A stretch of 61,316 nt of DNA, filler included, from Bipalium vagum (GCA_037834085.1; 3 parts of 3 records of this genome joined end to end with filler, not necessarily neighbours in it), one strand, 5' to 3'; shown: positions 31,001 to 37,000, counted from the first letter of the whole stretch. The notes: generated by a model not told the origin, from the letters alone. Program-made: numbers and translations.

Positions 31001-34000
31001 TAAAAAATTGGTTGAAAAAAAATATTGCCTCTTGAAACATGTTGACAATTATTTTTTTGAGGCTAGGTAGTCCAAAGTAAAAGCCCAATCAATGAGATTA
31101 TGGTAATATAAATAAAATTATTATTATTATTATTATTATTATTATTATTATTATTATTGATCTCTAAAATTGAATAGAAAAAGTTGGTAGTTTAAATTTT
31201 TTAGATATTTTTTTTGATGAGATCAGCTGTAACTTATAAAAATATTCTTTGAAGAACAATTGTTTCATGATAATAAACAATATCTTTTGATCGTATGTTA
31301 ACAAATAAATATTTTATATCAAGGGTTCTTTGATTAGCTGTTTCAAACCATTTTAAAGGCCAACTAATGACGAGCATGGTTTCATTAGAAAGGTTCATAT
31401 TTATTTTGTTTTTAATGAGATCAGTTGACTAGACTGTAATTCTGCAGACAGTTTTTTTTTAATATACTTTTCCTTATATTTAATTACAATAAACAAATTC
31501 CTTAATCAAATCTCTATATAGGTGATACAAATTGAAGTTTGTGTTATGAAGGTGATCAATATTGACGATTACTTCAAATGTTTTTATGAGGATAGCGATG
31601 ATTGAAGGCTTTTGAAGATCATTTTCAACAGATCAATTTGTGATATCTCCCCCATAAATATGAAATATTATTCATAGGATAACTAACACTATCACATTTT
31701 ATTGATCTAGAAATCTAAATGAATAAAATAACATTTTCATGACCTTATAATTGATGTTTAAAATAAAAGCTGAACATTTTCAAATTTTTAAAACATCTTT
31801 ATTTTCAAAAAAATAATCATGAAAAAGTATTTTCGCAAAGAAAGGAAGAAATTCTTTTCCAAATGTCAAAACAATTTATTGAATAAACTTGTTTTAATCA
31901 AATATATTCTCTCATTTTTCAGATAACGTTTTTCAATCCAGGCACTGTTAAGCGGAGATATTTAAGCAAAAATGACATAAACAGAGTTTACATAATATGT
32001 TTAAAAAACCGCATTTTTTATCAAATCTTAAGTGAAAAAATCAAAATAAAAAATATTTATACCAATACAAGTAAGTATATATAATTCCCATTTTCTCAAT
32101 TACCTCTTACAGACAAATTTTTCAGGTGATCAAACTTTATAGACAGCTTGGATTTTGCCATTTTATTGTCCATGAAATTTGTCACATTTTGAAAGGCAAT
32201 TAATATTCTGAAACTACGTTTTTCTCCTGTGAAATCCCATATTTCTGAATATGAATCTATCAAATATGTTCATATCTGGTGAGCAAGGAGATTGCCTTAT
32301 AATTTAATTCCACATGATTCACAGACGTCTTGTCTAATTGAAGCCATATGAAGACGAGCATTGTCATGTATTAGATGCAAACGTTTAGTTGGTCCTATAT
32401 CTAAAAGCATCTGCAGGAATTTAACAGAGTTCAGCATTAATCGACTGATTACTTTCTGAAACATGAAAGCGGAAATCACTACGAAAACTGCAGACAACAA
32501 TTATATGAAATTTATTGCCCGATATCGTTCCCTGATCTTTGTTGGCTGCTCATGATTCGGTACAACCCAATATGCATCATTTTGTTGAAATGATAAGATT
32601 TCACTAGACACCATTTTTTGGTCTACGACCACAGTATGATCTTGCAGATTTCGGAACAACTCTTTTGCTGCATTTACTCTCTGAAATTTGTGATACTCTT
32701 ATTCGATGAGAAGTAACATGGAGTTAACACGTTTATTAACACGGAGGCATTTTAACAACAAATTTTGAGTTATGATTCGATAAACTGAACTATAGTTGAT
32801 GCCAGTGAGAACAGCCATTGCTCTAATGGACAAATTGAAGTCTTTCAAGAAATTGTTTCACATTATTCACATATTTATCGGTCATTTGTTCATTTGGTCT
32901 TCCTCAACCTGAAATTCTTGAAACTCATTGACGCTGATTTATATTGAATTCCTGTGCAATTTCTTGAATTCTTCTTAAACCCCTGATTTCTCGACATCCA
33001 TTCAAGCTCGAGTTGTTGATGAAAAGAATAAGATAAAATAAAACTTTACAAAAACGCGGTTTTTTAAACATTCTATAATTTTAACATCTCTTATGAACTA
33101 AATTTTAACCATTTAAAGAGCTCTTTAGAGTACATTCATTGTTAAATATATCTAAATTCATTGAATTTCTGGGAGCCCATCGAAAATTCTTTCGACAAGA
33201 TTATGAAATCCTTTTCTTCATCTTTTTTTGCAGAAATAATCGTTTACTTTACCTATTTGTTGACAGTAAGATATTGAATACATTTTTGACAAAATTTCAA
33301 GATCTCATGATACATGATTCTCTTAAAGTCAAACTTTACCACTGTGTTGAGATTCATCTCATGTCGACAACAATTTTCCAATATCTTTCTTATCACCACC
33401 TTGTTGTCTCGTTTGTTTAAATGAAATGAATTTTAAAAAAATAATAAATCTTCCTTTTTATTGGGTCTCAACATTTAATTATTGGAAATAAATAATTTCA
33501 TAATTAATTATTCCAATCATGTATTATATATTATTTTTTATATATAATATTATATTTTTCAAAAAAATCTCTCTCAATATATGTAGAAGAGACCAACGGA
33601 AACTTAGATATAAAATAACTAAAATGAAGAATTTTCTTTTTATTTCATTTCGACCAGTCATATATCCTATAAATGTCGAACTAAATTATGTTTTAAATGT
33701 TTCAAATAAAAGTGAACAAATAAAAAATTGAGAATAAATTTAAAAAATATAATATATCACATATTAATAATAAATAGTAATATTAAAAAAATCTCGAAAC
33801 TAACTTGATGATATAGAAGGAGTAAGATGAGTGGTATGTCCATGATGTTTGGAAGAATCCTGAAATGAAAAATAAATAAGTAATTTCAAATAATAATTTG
33901 TTTTTAACATTCTACCAACGAATATAACAAAGACTTTCCCCCAACACCAATTAAGAGAAAAATGTTAATTTTATTTTAAACATACACAAATTCCCAGAGA

Positions 34001-37000
34001 GTTCGTAAAATTATAATTCTGATATTCTGGATAATTAGATAAGCGCAACCGCATATTTGGAGCTGACAATTGACGATCAATATTTGATGAAAGGAAATTG
34101 TTTTTTGACGAAAGAGAAGTAAGCTCAATTTGGATGGTTTTATATGATAATTGATCATCTTCAATAAAAATTTTAGGAGGTTCTCTACAGCTGATAGTTC
34201 GTCGAGCTGGTTTATTATTAGTGAGTAAGGCATTAGTCGTTTCGTCTTCGGAATCTACGGTTTCTTTTATTTGTTTTAAAAAGCTGGAACCATAACATGA
34301 TGAATATACATTGTCTATTTCCATTAGAATTGATTTCAAACTTCCTTCCGAATAATTAAACGTTGAAATATCTCCTTCAAATGATGGTTGACTTAGAGCT
34401 AAATTAGTTTTTAAATCAAAATCTTTTGAGAAATTAACGGCTGCTGAATAGCTTCTTTTGAAATTACTAAGTTTCATCATTTTATTCTCTACTAAATTGC
34501 AGGGTTTATCTTCGAATGAGGTAGGCACAGGTGACACATTGGTCATAGTGGTCTCTTCACTGTATGTTCTTAATCTAGTATCAGTATCATTAGCAATAAT
34601 CTCAAGACTGTTTCCTGATCTCAAAGAAACAAGATTAACATGTTTAGATGACTTCTTTACACAGCAAAACGAATTCGAAAATTTAAAACTACTGAAAAAA
34701 GATTTTCTACGTTTCTTTGGATGAGATTTGACAGACGGACTATTTCTGTTAATGATAAAGTAATATTAATGTTACTTAATCAATTTCAATCAATTACTTA
34801 AATATTTCAACAGAACAAATATTGAAATTATCATTGTAAAATGTCATTCTAAATTCAGTACGTAATGAGTTCGTTTTACTAATAAAAGAAAAATGGGAGT
34901 TTAGTCAAAGCTACAATATGATATAATAAAATCTGGAATAATACAATAAAAGTAATGTTTTTATTTTATTTTAAAATTTTCAATTATATATCACACATCT
35001 CCATTAGCAATAGTATTAAATTAAATTATTGTTTTTTTTACAAAATTAAAAGGTAAACAATATTAAAAAAGTTTCTTTACTCCTTATTGGTGTAATATTA
35101 TACAATCAATCAATATAATCAATAAATATCACTTTCACTTATACAAAAATAATAATTAATAATATTAATATTTAACATTATAATATGATTATCTTTATTA
35201 AAAAATAATTAAAATAAATATGACATAATCCTCACACGTAATATCCAAAACAAAAGTATTACTGGTATAAGACAAATCTTAAATACTCATTTCATAATAA
35301 TAGTGATAAAATTTTATTAACAATAATATTTACAACAGAAAAACAATGAGCAAATCATTTTTGTAGGTTCAATGAAATTTTCCGCCAATTCACAAAATGA
35401 ACTTTAACAAGCCAATTCTGTGCTTTGAGATTCGTTTTTATGGCATCAACTTATTTAGAAAACACAGAAAACAATTTTAGAGCAAATCTTAAGCGCCAAG
35501 GAATAAGATAAACACAAAAAATTATCACATCCTAAACATGCAAAAGATCGATTGATTTTTTATTGACTCAACTTTGGAGACACGTCTTTGAAAAGGTAAC
35601 GAGAACTATTCCAGTGTGGAAGCAATCACACAGAAGCTTAGATACTGTAAACGTATATATATATCAGAAAGCTGAAAATCGTTTAAAATGGAAATCAAAT
35701 GTTATGAACAATCTGAAAGAGCTAGCAAAAATTAACGTGCAACAGTCATAGAAATGCACAACAACGACAACATATTAGTAAGGCAAGCTTTGAACAATTA
35801 TCGGAATCGACAAATACCTTTGATTTACTATCAAAATTTTGAGGACTATTTGGATTTATGTGACTCAGACCTTGTGATATAATGTTATTGCTCACGTTAG
35901 GTGTTGAAGAGGATCTTTCACGACGTTGAGCCAACGGTGAGGTAAAAGACGAGGGACTGGAATTACTAAAATACAAATTATTCATGAACCTATAATACAT
36001 CACTTTTTTTCAAAATTCACTAAAAATAACATTGTTATTGAATGAGAAATCATAACAATTAAATAATCGAAACAAAATCATACAATTTGTTACTGTAGCT
36101 AGCGCTAGATTCACCACTGAAAGTCGTCATAAACACCTCATCATCGCCAACTGCACAACACGACTTTCCAACACAGCGATTATGATATGCTCCCCAACAT
36201 ATTTTACAGGAAACCCCTGTAGAAATCATTAATGGTGAAGAACCACTGGCTGTTAAAGAACTGACCAATAAATACAAATTTATGGCAAATATCACAATAT
36301 TGTTTTTCGAAAAATGTTTTCCTTTGCAACTGATGAAAGTTCTTGAATATTCTTTTTTCTATATACTGAACTGATATGGTTTCACCTGTCAATGCTACAC
36401 GTATAGCATCTGTGTTCCAAGGTATGGACTTCCTGAAATAGAACTGATCTGTTAAACATCTAATTTCTATTTTATTTCACTTTAATTTAAATTAAACAAA
36501 TTGAACTAATGAGACTAATTTAGATTTCTGAACATAGAACAGATTTATTATATCCTTCAAATGTGTCAAAAATTGGTTCCTGGAAATTTTAACAGACATA
36601 TAATCCGCTTAATAGAATAAATTTCATGAAATTTATCCATTATGTTTAAAAATAGAAAAAAGTTCTGGATTTTAAGTTTGTACGACAATCTGGGTCAGAT
36701 ATTATTTTCAGATAATTATTTTAAAAAATTTTGTTAATAATATTTATTCATCAATCAGTAAACTAACCAATAAAAAAACAATTCATTTCAAAATGTAATA
36801 GTCAAGATTCGCAAGAACCGAAGTTTTAATAGATGTCTATAAGTAGTATTAATATAAAATATCATGATGAATGAATGAATTCGTCTAAATCAAAATTGTC
36901 TGTTTAATGTTATATAAAATCTTGTTAATCAAAAGGAAAACCTCACTCTTTATAATTATGGGTGTAAATATAATTAATATTTGATTAAAGTACATTTATA

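Follow-up and report, generated by a model that had tools for sequence, protein, structure and literature searches.

Raf autoinhibition is locked chiefly through the canonical 14-3-3 site in conserved region 2 (CR2) of these kinases, pS259 in C-Raf and pS365 in B-Raf (RSSSAPNV), where mutations in cancer and RASopathies cluster. The IIIb and IIIc exons of FGFR2 are mutually exclusive exons of the frame-enforced kind: neither length is a multiple of three, and the inclusion of both or of neither leads to a premature stop. Here we describe a Raf gene of the flatworm Bipalium vagum (GCA_037834085.1) that resembles both systems and in which the C1 domain and the hinge are separated by two apparently alternative exons: exon A, the ordinary inhibitory CR2 exon, and exon B, a lineage-specific exon of 253 codons. 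The gene was traced on the minus strand of a joined stretch of B. vagum DNA of 61,316 nucleotides (nt; the window), to whose whole length all coordinates refer. The piece analysed was 16391–43032 (26.6 kb, GC content 0.26), and features lie on the minus strand unless a plus strand is given.

Within the Raf family, the kinase is kept closed by a 14-3-3 dimer that spans the CR2 site and the C-terminal site, both phosphorylated, and activation requires dephosphorylation of the CR2 site by the SHOC2 complex (PMC12402067). Alternative exons are described for B-Raf, in which exons 8b and 9b (10a in human numbering) are lineage-restricted hinge cassettes that lower or raise kinase activity via autoinhibition, exon 8b being restricted to eutherians (PMC3008692). 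Like these cassettes, exon B is an apparently alternative coding exon between the regulatory N-terminus and the kinase, and is restricted to a lineage. The B-Raf cassettes are short, lie downstream of a constant CR2 and can be skipped in frame, whereas exon B, if used as its phases suggest, would replace the CR2 exon, has a CR2-type site of its own, and would be forced by the frame to exclude exon A. We know of no Raf whose CR2 exon itself has an alternative, and a full-text literature search on mutually exclusive exons together with Raf, CR2 and 14-3-3 returned no paper combining all these terms. Alternative Raf hinge exons are already known; an alternative to the CR2 exon itself would be a new variation.

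The exons were traced by direct reading, by stop-free segments, and by alignment to other Raf proteins and to a spliced contig of a relative. The C1b exon (36216–36084), encoding the second half of the C1 (cysteine-rich) domain and a linker, ends in phase 2 at the donor aac aaa tt|gtatga. The next constitutive exon is a small one of 55 nt (33859–33805), entered in phase 0 and left in phase 1. Between them lie exon A (35965–35818; 148 nt, 49 codons, acceptor ttttag|, donor aag|gtattt) and exon B (34745–33986; 760 nt, stop-free throughout, acceptor ttaacag|, donor tgt|gtatgt), both phase 2 in and phase 0 out. Each exon supplies the one base that completes the split codon of C1b and ends at a codon boundary, both lengths being 1 mod 3. 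The coordinates and phases which the original prediction had assigned to the C1b donor, the acceptor at 33859 and the two exons were all correct on direct reading, and so was the length gap between the two products (938 versus 734 residues, a difference of 204). As it had claimed, either exon alone keeps the frame and the two together break it, with A followed by B reading AAA TAG. A direct join of C1b to 33859, skipping both exons, also shifts the frame. The alternative acceptor it had offered for exon B, at 34848, can be discounted, since the frame from there meets stop codons.

This arrangement raises two questions. First, is exon B a genuine coding exon of the Raf gene? Second, are A and B used as alternatives?

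With regard to the first question, no stop-to-stop frame in the 26.6-kb piece is longer than the one that contains exon B (34765–33974), with 264 codons. The maximum among 200 shuffles of the piece was 149 codons, and 214 codons when the base composition of exon B itself was used. The GC content of exon B (0.32) falls in the range of the other exons (0.31–0.43), compared with 0.20–0.24 for the flanking introns. Exon B occurs once in the 440-Mb assembly, whether searched as protein or as DNA, and matched no family in Pfam; a transposon or repeat origin is ruled out by these two results, a transposon match being one of the outcomes that the original prediction had named as fatal to its proposal. 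A word search gave two relatives only, P0001 on contig L004 and P0002 on contig L005, with 65–66% identity. A search with a three-sequence profile by HMMER against 1.84 billion representative proteins found nothing beyond these two orthologues, and no relatives were found in the ESM Atlas (scores below 0.9) or among JGI metagenome contigs. Since all these searches together gave only two orthologues, exon B is, as far as they reach, an orphan restricted to a small clade.

The relatives are represented by three short contigs (L004, L005 and L006) from Logan assemblies of other sequencing runs, L004 from SRR21676451 and both L005 and L006 from SRR33002330. Exon B was compared among three species, those of the window, L004 and L005 (alignment A2). 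The orthologous exons, L004:123–891 (769 nt) and L005:178–943 (766 nt), are both 1 mod 3, all indels among the three are whole codons, and the acceptor ..ttaacag| and the donor |gtaYgt are common to all. The ratio of nonsynonymous to synonymous substitution rates (dN/dS, Nei–Gojobori) is 0.21 for window–L004, 0.135 for window–L005 and 0.13 for L004–L005, at dS of 0.7–1.6, so that the value below 1 proposed beforehand as a check was obtained in all three pairs. Differences amount to 0.31–0.48 at third codon positions versus 0.08–0.23 at positions 1 and 2. AlphaFold2, run on a shallow alignment of the three sequences, gave a mean predicted local distance difference test score (pLDDT) of 35 and two weak helices only, which fits a disordered linker.

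That exon B is non-functional (an open frame by chance, a pseudo-exon in decay or a piece of a transposon) might be argued from its predicted disorder, its low-complexity-like composition, the lack of a family and the confinement of its relatives to a small clade. This explanation is close to refuted by an open frame beyond all shuffles, by the low dN/dS over three species with indels all in multiples of three, and by the single copy and the conserved splice sites. As judged from these comparisons, exon B is very probably a true coding exon of Raf, specific to its lineage and under selection, with a second CR2-type site. It offers a clear example of strong purifying selection on a young orphan exon within an ancient signalling gene.

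In all three species, stop codons close the frame of exon B 7–9 codons 5′ of the acceptor, and there is no conserved in-frame ATG ahead of M231. Exon B must therefore be an internal exon, reached through splicing in phase 2. It might belong instead to another transcription unit, either as the internal exon of a nested gene on the same strand or as an exon reached from a promoter or exon inside the A–B intron, and with no splice to C1. L004 starts 122 nt 5′ of exon B, within the intron, the C1b-to-B junction was not assembled, and L004 alone has an ATG at codon 5 of the exon, which would be in keeping with such a unit. The other two species, however, have GTG or GTC at that codon, and the upstream stops lie ahead of a conserved acceptor. 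Furthermore, an unrelated gene would hardly have acquired the invariant CR2-type motif by chance, and L004 runs from exon B into Raf hinge and kinase exons on the same strand. A separate unit is thus quite improbable.

Exon A has an orthologue at L006:877–1024, likewise of 148 nt, with 82% amino acid identity, a dN of 0.109 and a dN/dS of 0.11. L006 is unspliced and carries C1a, C1b and exon A; its C1b orthologue (L006:469–601, 133 nt) ends at the donor ct|gtatga in phase 2. Because L006 and L005 come from one run, at least one relative keeps both exons: the third species has exon A on L006 and exon B on L005, with the same phase arithmetic. Equal entry and exit phases, with each exon alone in frame, are kept in L006 for A and in L004 and L005 for B, and the inclusion of both exons or of neither is non-productive in the window; for L004, the arithmetic of A plus B gives ACT TAG. 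For the same species pair the dN of exon B is 0.217 versus 0.109 for exon A, i.e. B evolves about twice as fast, at a rate that resembles those of the linker part of C1b (dN 0.175) and of the hinge exons (72–79% identity).

The intron after exon A opens with a conserved non-coding element (35814–35733; 74% over 88 nt with L006, E 5e-13), which has a 6-nt indel relative to L006 and no conserved frame; it may be a splicing control element. The conservation of the first 85 nt of this intron without obvious reason is also what could speak for A and B being joined in one mRNA, through an unrecognised small exon (2 mod 3) or non-canonical sites, to give a Raf with tandem CR2 sites. Internal donors of exon A that would let the two coexist were sought, and no GT within the exon yields phase 2. 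Nor does any AG in or upstream of B give a phase-0 entry inside the open frame, and there is no further conserved island in the comparable parts of the A–B intron. Joint inclusion requires an extra assumption and is very improbable.

Exon B has conserved flanks as well. On its 5′ side lies a conserved intron flank with the acceptor (34805–34746, ..tttatcattaacag|), the last 50 nt of which are 73–78% identical to L004 and L005 and thus as conserved as the exon itself. On its 3′ side, the intron between exon B and the small exon (33985–33860) has 126 nt, the donor gtatgt and an in-frame stop at 33973–33971. Its first 12 nt are 82–92% identical across species and its interior 55–63%. About 40 nt after the donor a G-run, GGTGYYGGGGAA at 33948–33934, is kept in all three species. 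This G-run (33934–33948, GGTGTTGGGGGAAAG) sits in an intron of 22% GC and resembles an intronic splicing enhancer. Conserved flanks at both A and B are typical of regulated exons and therefore favour a swap of the two exons.

The two exons were compared with the canonical CR2 site. In exon A the site is R-S-S-S-T-P-N-V (35922–35893), with the candidate phosphoserine 29 residues before the exon end as read from the sequence; R-S-S-S-T-P is a full fit to the mode-1 14-3-3 motif R-[S/aromatic]-x-pS-x-P. Exon B has RQLSAPNM (34075–34052), a CR2-like site of the 14-3-3 type (R-x-x-S-x-P) with its serine 26 residues before the exon end, inside the longest stretch of invariant residues in the exon (N221 to L235 in A2). 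Like the canonical site, each has N and a hydrophobic residue directly after R-x-x-S-x-P, and the pattern R..[ST].PN[VMIL] has just two matches in six frames of the 26.6-kb piece, one in each exon. The C-terminal site needed for bridging by a 14-3-3 dimer is also present (R-C-T-S-E-P). In contrast to the canonical site, that of exon B has Q at the −2 position in place of serine and is without the upstream Ser/Thr-rich context; its surroundings are unrelated, and by sequence it is a candidate site, whose phosphorylation and 14-3-3 binding are predicted. Given the spacing of 26 residues in B versus 29 in A, the distance to the hinge and kinase is preserved.

The further motifs which the original prediction had listed in exon B (RTYSEE, RSYSAA and RTISCR), together with its 253 stop-free codons, were borne out on reading. 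They belong to conservation blocks of A2 (R-L-R-T-x-S-E-E, F-K-R-S-x-S-A-A and A-R-R-T-x-S-C-R-E), and none of the three has a proline at +2. The first is a basophilic site, R-L-R-T-Y-S (R-x-R-x-x-S; 34576–34559), with R57, R59 and S62 invariant; the second is K-R-S-Y-S (R-S-x-S; 34459–34445), with K96, R97, S98 and S100 invariant; the third is R-R-T-I-S (34204–34190), with R181, R182, T183 and S185 invariant. Near the start of exon B, a nearly invariant basic/aromatic segment with a Cys-Cys pair, KRRK..F.S..FSNS.CCVKK (34714–34652), has K11–K14, F17, S19, F22–S25 and C27–K31 as invariant columns. A role of this segment in membrane binding is conceivable from its composition.

As for the second question, transcript-level information comes from L004. 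In this contig the small exon runs straight into the hinge exon and two kinase exons, free of the introns of 3.2 kb, 1.1 kb and 50 nt that interrupt the window at exactly these places. L004 ends one base past the end of exon 28843–28684, just as de Bruijn contigs end where splicing branches, and L005, from a fairly close relative of L004, retains the first of these downstream introns. For these three reasons we infer that L004 is RNA-derived. Exon B stands in it in sense orientation and continuous with the downstream Raf exons, and the exon B region would therefore be transcribed within Raf RNA; the inclusion of B in mature mRNA is neither proved nor disproved by this contig. L004 (1–1023) is unbroken at the start of the small exon, so that the exon A junction was not assembled in SRR21676451. 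The sole run in which the stretch itself was found is DNA; its 4251-bp contig covers 33700–36400 at 100% identity and is possibly the assembly's own data.

The main rival to a swap is a truncated isoform without the kinase. In that case C1b would be spliced to B and the 126-nt intron after B retained, with a stop 4 codons past the exon (7–13 in the relatives), and the product (RBD, C1 and B) would be a dominant-negative binder of Ras like DA-Raf. DA-Raf itself arises from A-Raf by splicing, lacks the kinase and counteracts ERK signalling (PMC12540644), L004 retains the intron after B while the downstream introns are spliced out, and an in-frame stop follows the donor closely in all three species. 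If that intron is retained as in L004, the product would resemble DA-Raf in consisting of RBD, C1 and a tail. A long conserved extra exon bearing a CR2-like site is, on the other hand, absent from DA-Raf, and in the flatworm gene the conservation of the donor and its phase speaks for reading on into the kinase. All three species conserve the donor gtaYgt, its phase 0, which agrees with the next exon, and the G-run within an otherwise 55–63% identical intron; amino acid conservation reaches the last codon of exon B and falls at the donor; and a serine-to-exon-end spacing like that of exon A makes sense only if the kinase follows. L004 also keeps the upstream intron and thus has the look of an RNA still being processed, not of a mature mRNA. 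A truncated isoform is rather unlikely in view of these points, and for the first three of them the swap of A and B is preferred.

Several observations weigh against the swap. The C1b-to-B junction and that from B to 33859 are deduced from the sequence and not from an observed junction read. L004 has lost three downstream introns but still carries the 132-nt intron on the 3′ side of B and, on its 5′ side, at least 122 nt of intron, and neither a branch from A to the next exon nor a spliced path from B to the next exon was assembled there. None of the assembled proteins searched unites B with C1 or the kinase in one open frame. The donor of exon 2 at 38802 is also in phase 2, and the upstream partner of B is therefore not uniquely set by the frame. 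No RNA pairing was detected between the flank after A and the flank before B: the inverted repeats are AT-rich chance matches and the duplex energies are no better than those of shuffles (z −1.1 and −0.6), for which reason pairing of the docking/selector type was dropped as a mechanism of exclusivity. Finally, A and B are very unequal (148 versus 760 nt), unlike classic duplicated pairs, and BLASTP of one against the other gave no alignment (E 14). In this respect they differ from FGFR2 IIIb/IIIc, with which they share their neighbouring position, lengths that are not multiples of three and the productivity of single inclusion only. Classic pairs are duplicates alike in length and sequence, whereas A and B have a five-fold length gap (49 versus 253 codons) and only the short motif R-x-x-S-x-P-N-hydrophobic in common; an origin of the two by tandem duplication is unsupported. 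The retained introns around B in L004 could reflect slow, regulated splicing or low expression of the A form in that sample. On balance, mutually exclusive use of A and B, with B giving rise to a second full-length isoform, accounts for the evidence best, and we consider it somewhat probable.

The original prediction had gone further and proposed that splicing swaps the autoinhibitory CR2 module for a long multi-phosphosite hinge. What stands of this is that exon B is a real exon under selection and that the frame logic is kept in a relative; the removal of the CR2 module does not stand, as exon B would substitute a second CR2-like site at a near-equal distance, together with about 205 predicted disordered residues. 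In the mechanism we propose, only mRNAs with exactly one of A and B would encode a full Raf, whereas A plus B or neither would meet an early stop and presumably undergo nonsense-mediated decay, so that exclusivity would be enforced by the frame and by decay. Exon B would contribute its predicted disorder, the basic/aromatic Cys-Cys segment, three or four further conserved basophilic serine sites and the terminal RQLSAPNM. The closed state would remain accessible to the B isoform, with 14-3-3 bridging its CR2-type and C-terminal sites. Its CR2-type site would lie in a different kinase and phosphatase context, behind a linker about 205 residues longer with extra regulatory sites.

A bolder interpretation is that exon B makes a second kind of Raf. 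Its Cys-Cys basic segment, like polybasic or palmitoylated anchors, might hold the kinase at the membrane independently of Ras, and its private CR2-type and basophilic sites might place autoinhibition under other kinases and phosphatases. This is distinctly unlikely as judged at present. If true, a single gene would provide a Ras-gated Raf and a pre-localised, differently gated Raf through a frame-enforced exon swap.

The remaining exons identify the gene as a Raf, with a Raf-type kinase domain, RBD and C1, a CR2 R-S-x-S-x-P site and a C-terminal R-x-x-S-x-P site. Upstream of C1b, the first part of the RBD lies at 42097–41843 (5′ boundary tentative; phase 0 out), the second part at 38899–38802 (exon 2, phase 2 out), and the RBD end with C1a at 36432–36266 (phase 1 out); the first visible exon opens at an acceptor. 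Downstream of the small exon follow, by exon tracing, the hinge exon (30606–30407), kinase exons (29261–28894, 28843–28684 and 19521–19255) and the last exon (19212–19012), which is followed by a stop codon and contains the putative C-terminal 14-3-3 site (19164–19147, read from the sequence). The C1 pattern H-x12-C-x2-C..C-x2-C-x4-H-x2-C spans C1a and C1b, and the Pfam C1_1 match is partial (E 0.038) because an intron splits the domain. Kinase exon 29261–28894 matches Pfam PF07714 (PK_Tyr_Ser-Thr) and PF00069 (Pkinase). In protein searches made exon by exon, the nearest proteins were the flatworm Raf kinases of Dugesia japonica, Echinostoma caproni and Schistocephalus solidus, and the best matches also took in Raf proteins of other animals. 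None of these is close, with 66–80% identity over the part aligned to the contig of the relative as query, and 70–78% to the first kinase exon of the window. The RBD end and C1 region align to P0039, the Raf of another animal, and exon A aligns to the CR2 of the same protein.

Several introns of the gene have contents of their own. A 9.1-kb intron (19522–28683) divides the kinase domain between ..GSILWM and APEVIRM.., and inside it a plus-strand open frame of 127 codons (20622–21002) includes an acidic stretch and matches no Pfam family significantly. A decayed transposase of the mariner/Mos1 type was found on the plus strand (37208–38125), in the intron that separates C1a from the second RBD exon; its HTH_48 domain (PF17906, E 3.4e-8) at 37208–37354 gives way to broken frames that read like transposase. 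A second broken relic, mariner/Tc1-like (32300–32857), lies in the 3.2-kb intron downstream of the small exon, with a ..HDNARLH.. stretch and weak DDE_3 and HTH matches only (E 0.06–0.08).

Two more Raf-like kinase loci are present in the same AT-rich genome, at G000:C199065:13518–13932 (L009:9239–9653) and G000:C224795:535–941 (L008). Both are 75–80% identical to the first kinase exon and have an additional short intron near residue 64. The B. vagum genome therefore holds at least two or three Raf paralogues. Neither CR2 exons nor exon-B-like sequence of these two loci were found on their short contigs.

The significance of the finding is limited by the obscure flatworm lineage in which it was made and by splice junctions deduced from the sequence. 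If the swap is true, an isoform that exchanges its CR2 exon would be an evolutionary experiment on how much of the C1-to-kinase stretch the closed state requires, in which the R-x-x-S-x-P-N core and its spacing are kept and everything around them is changed. Such an isoform would show whether splicing can retune the autoinhibitory lock of Raf.

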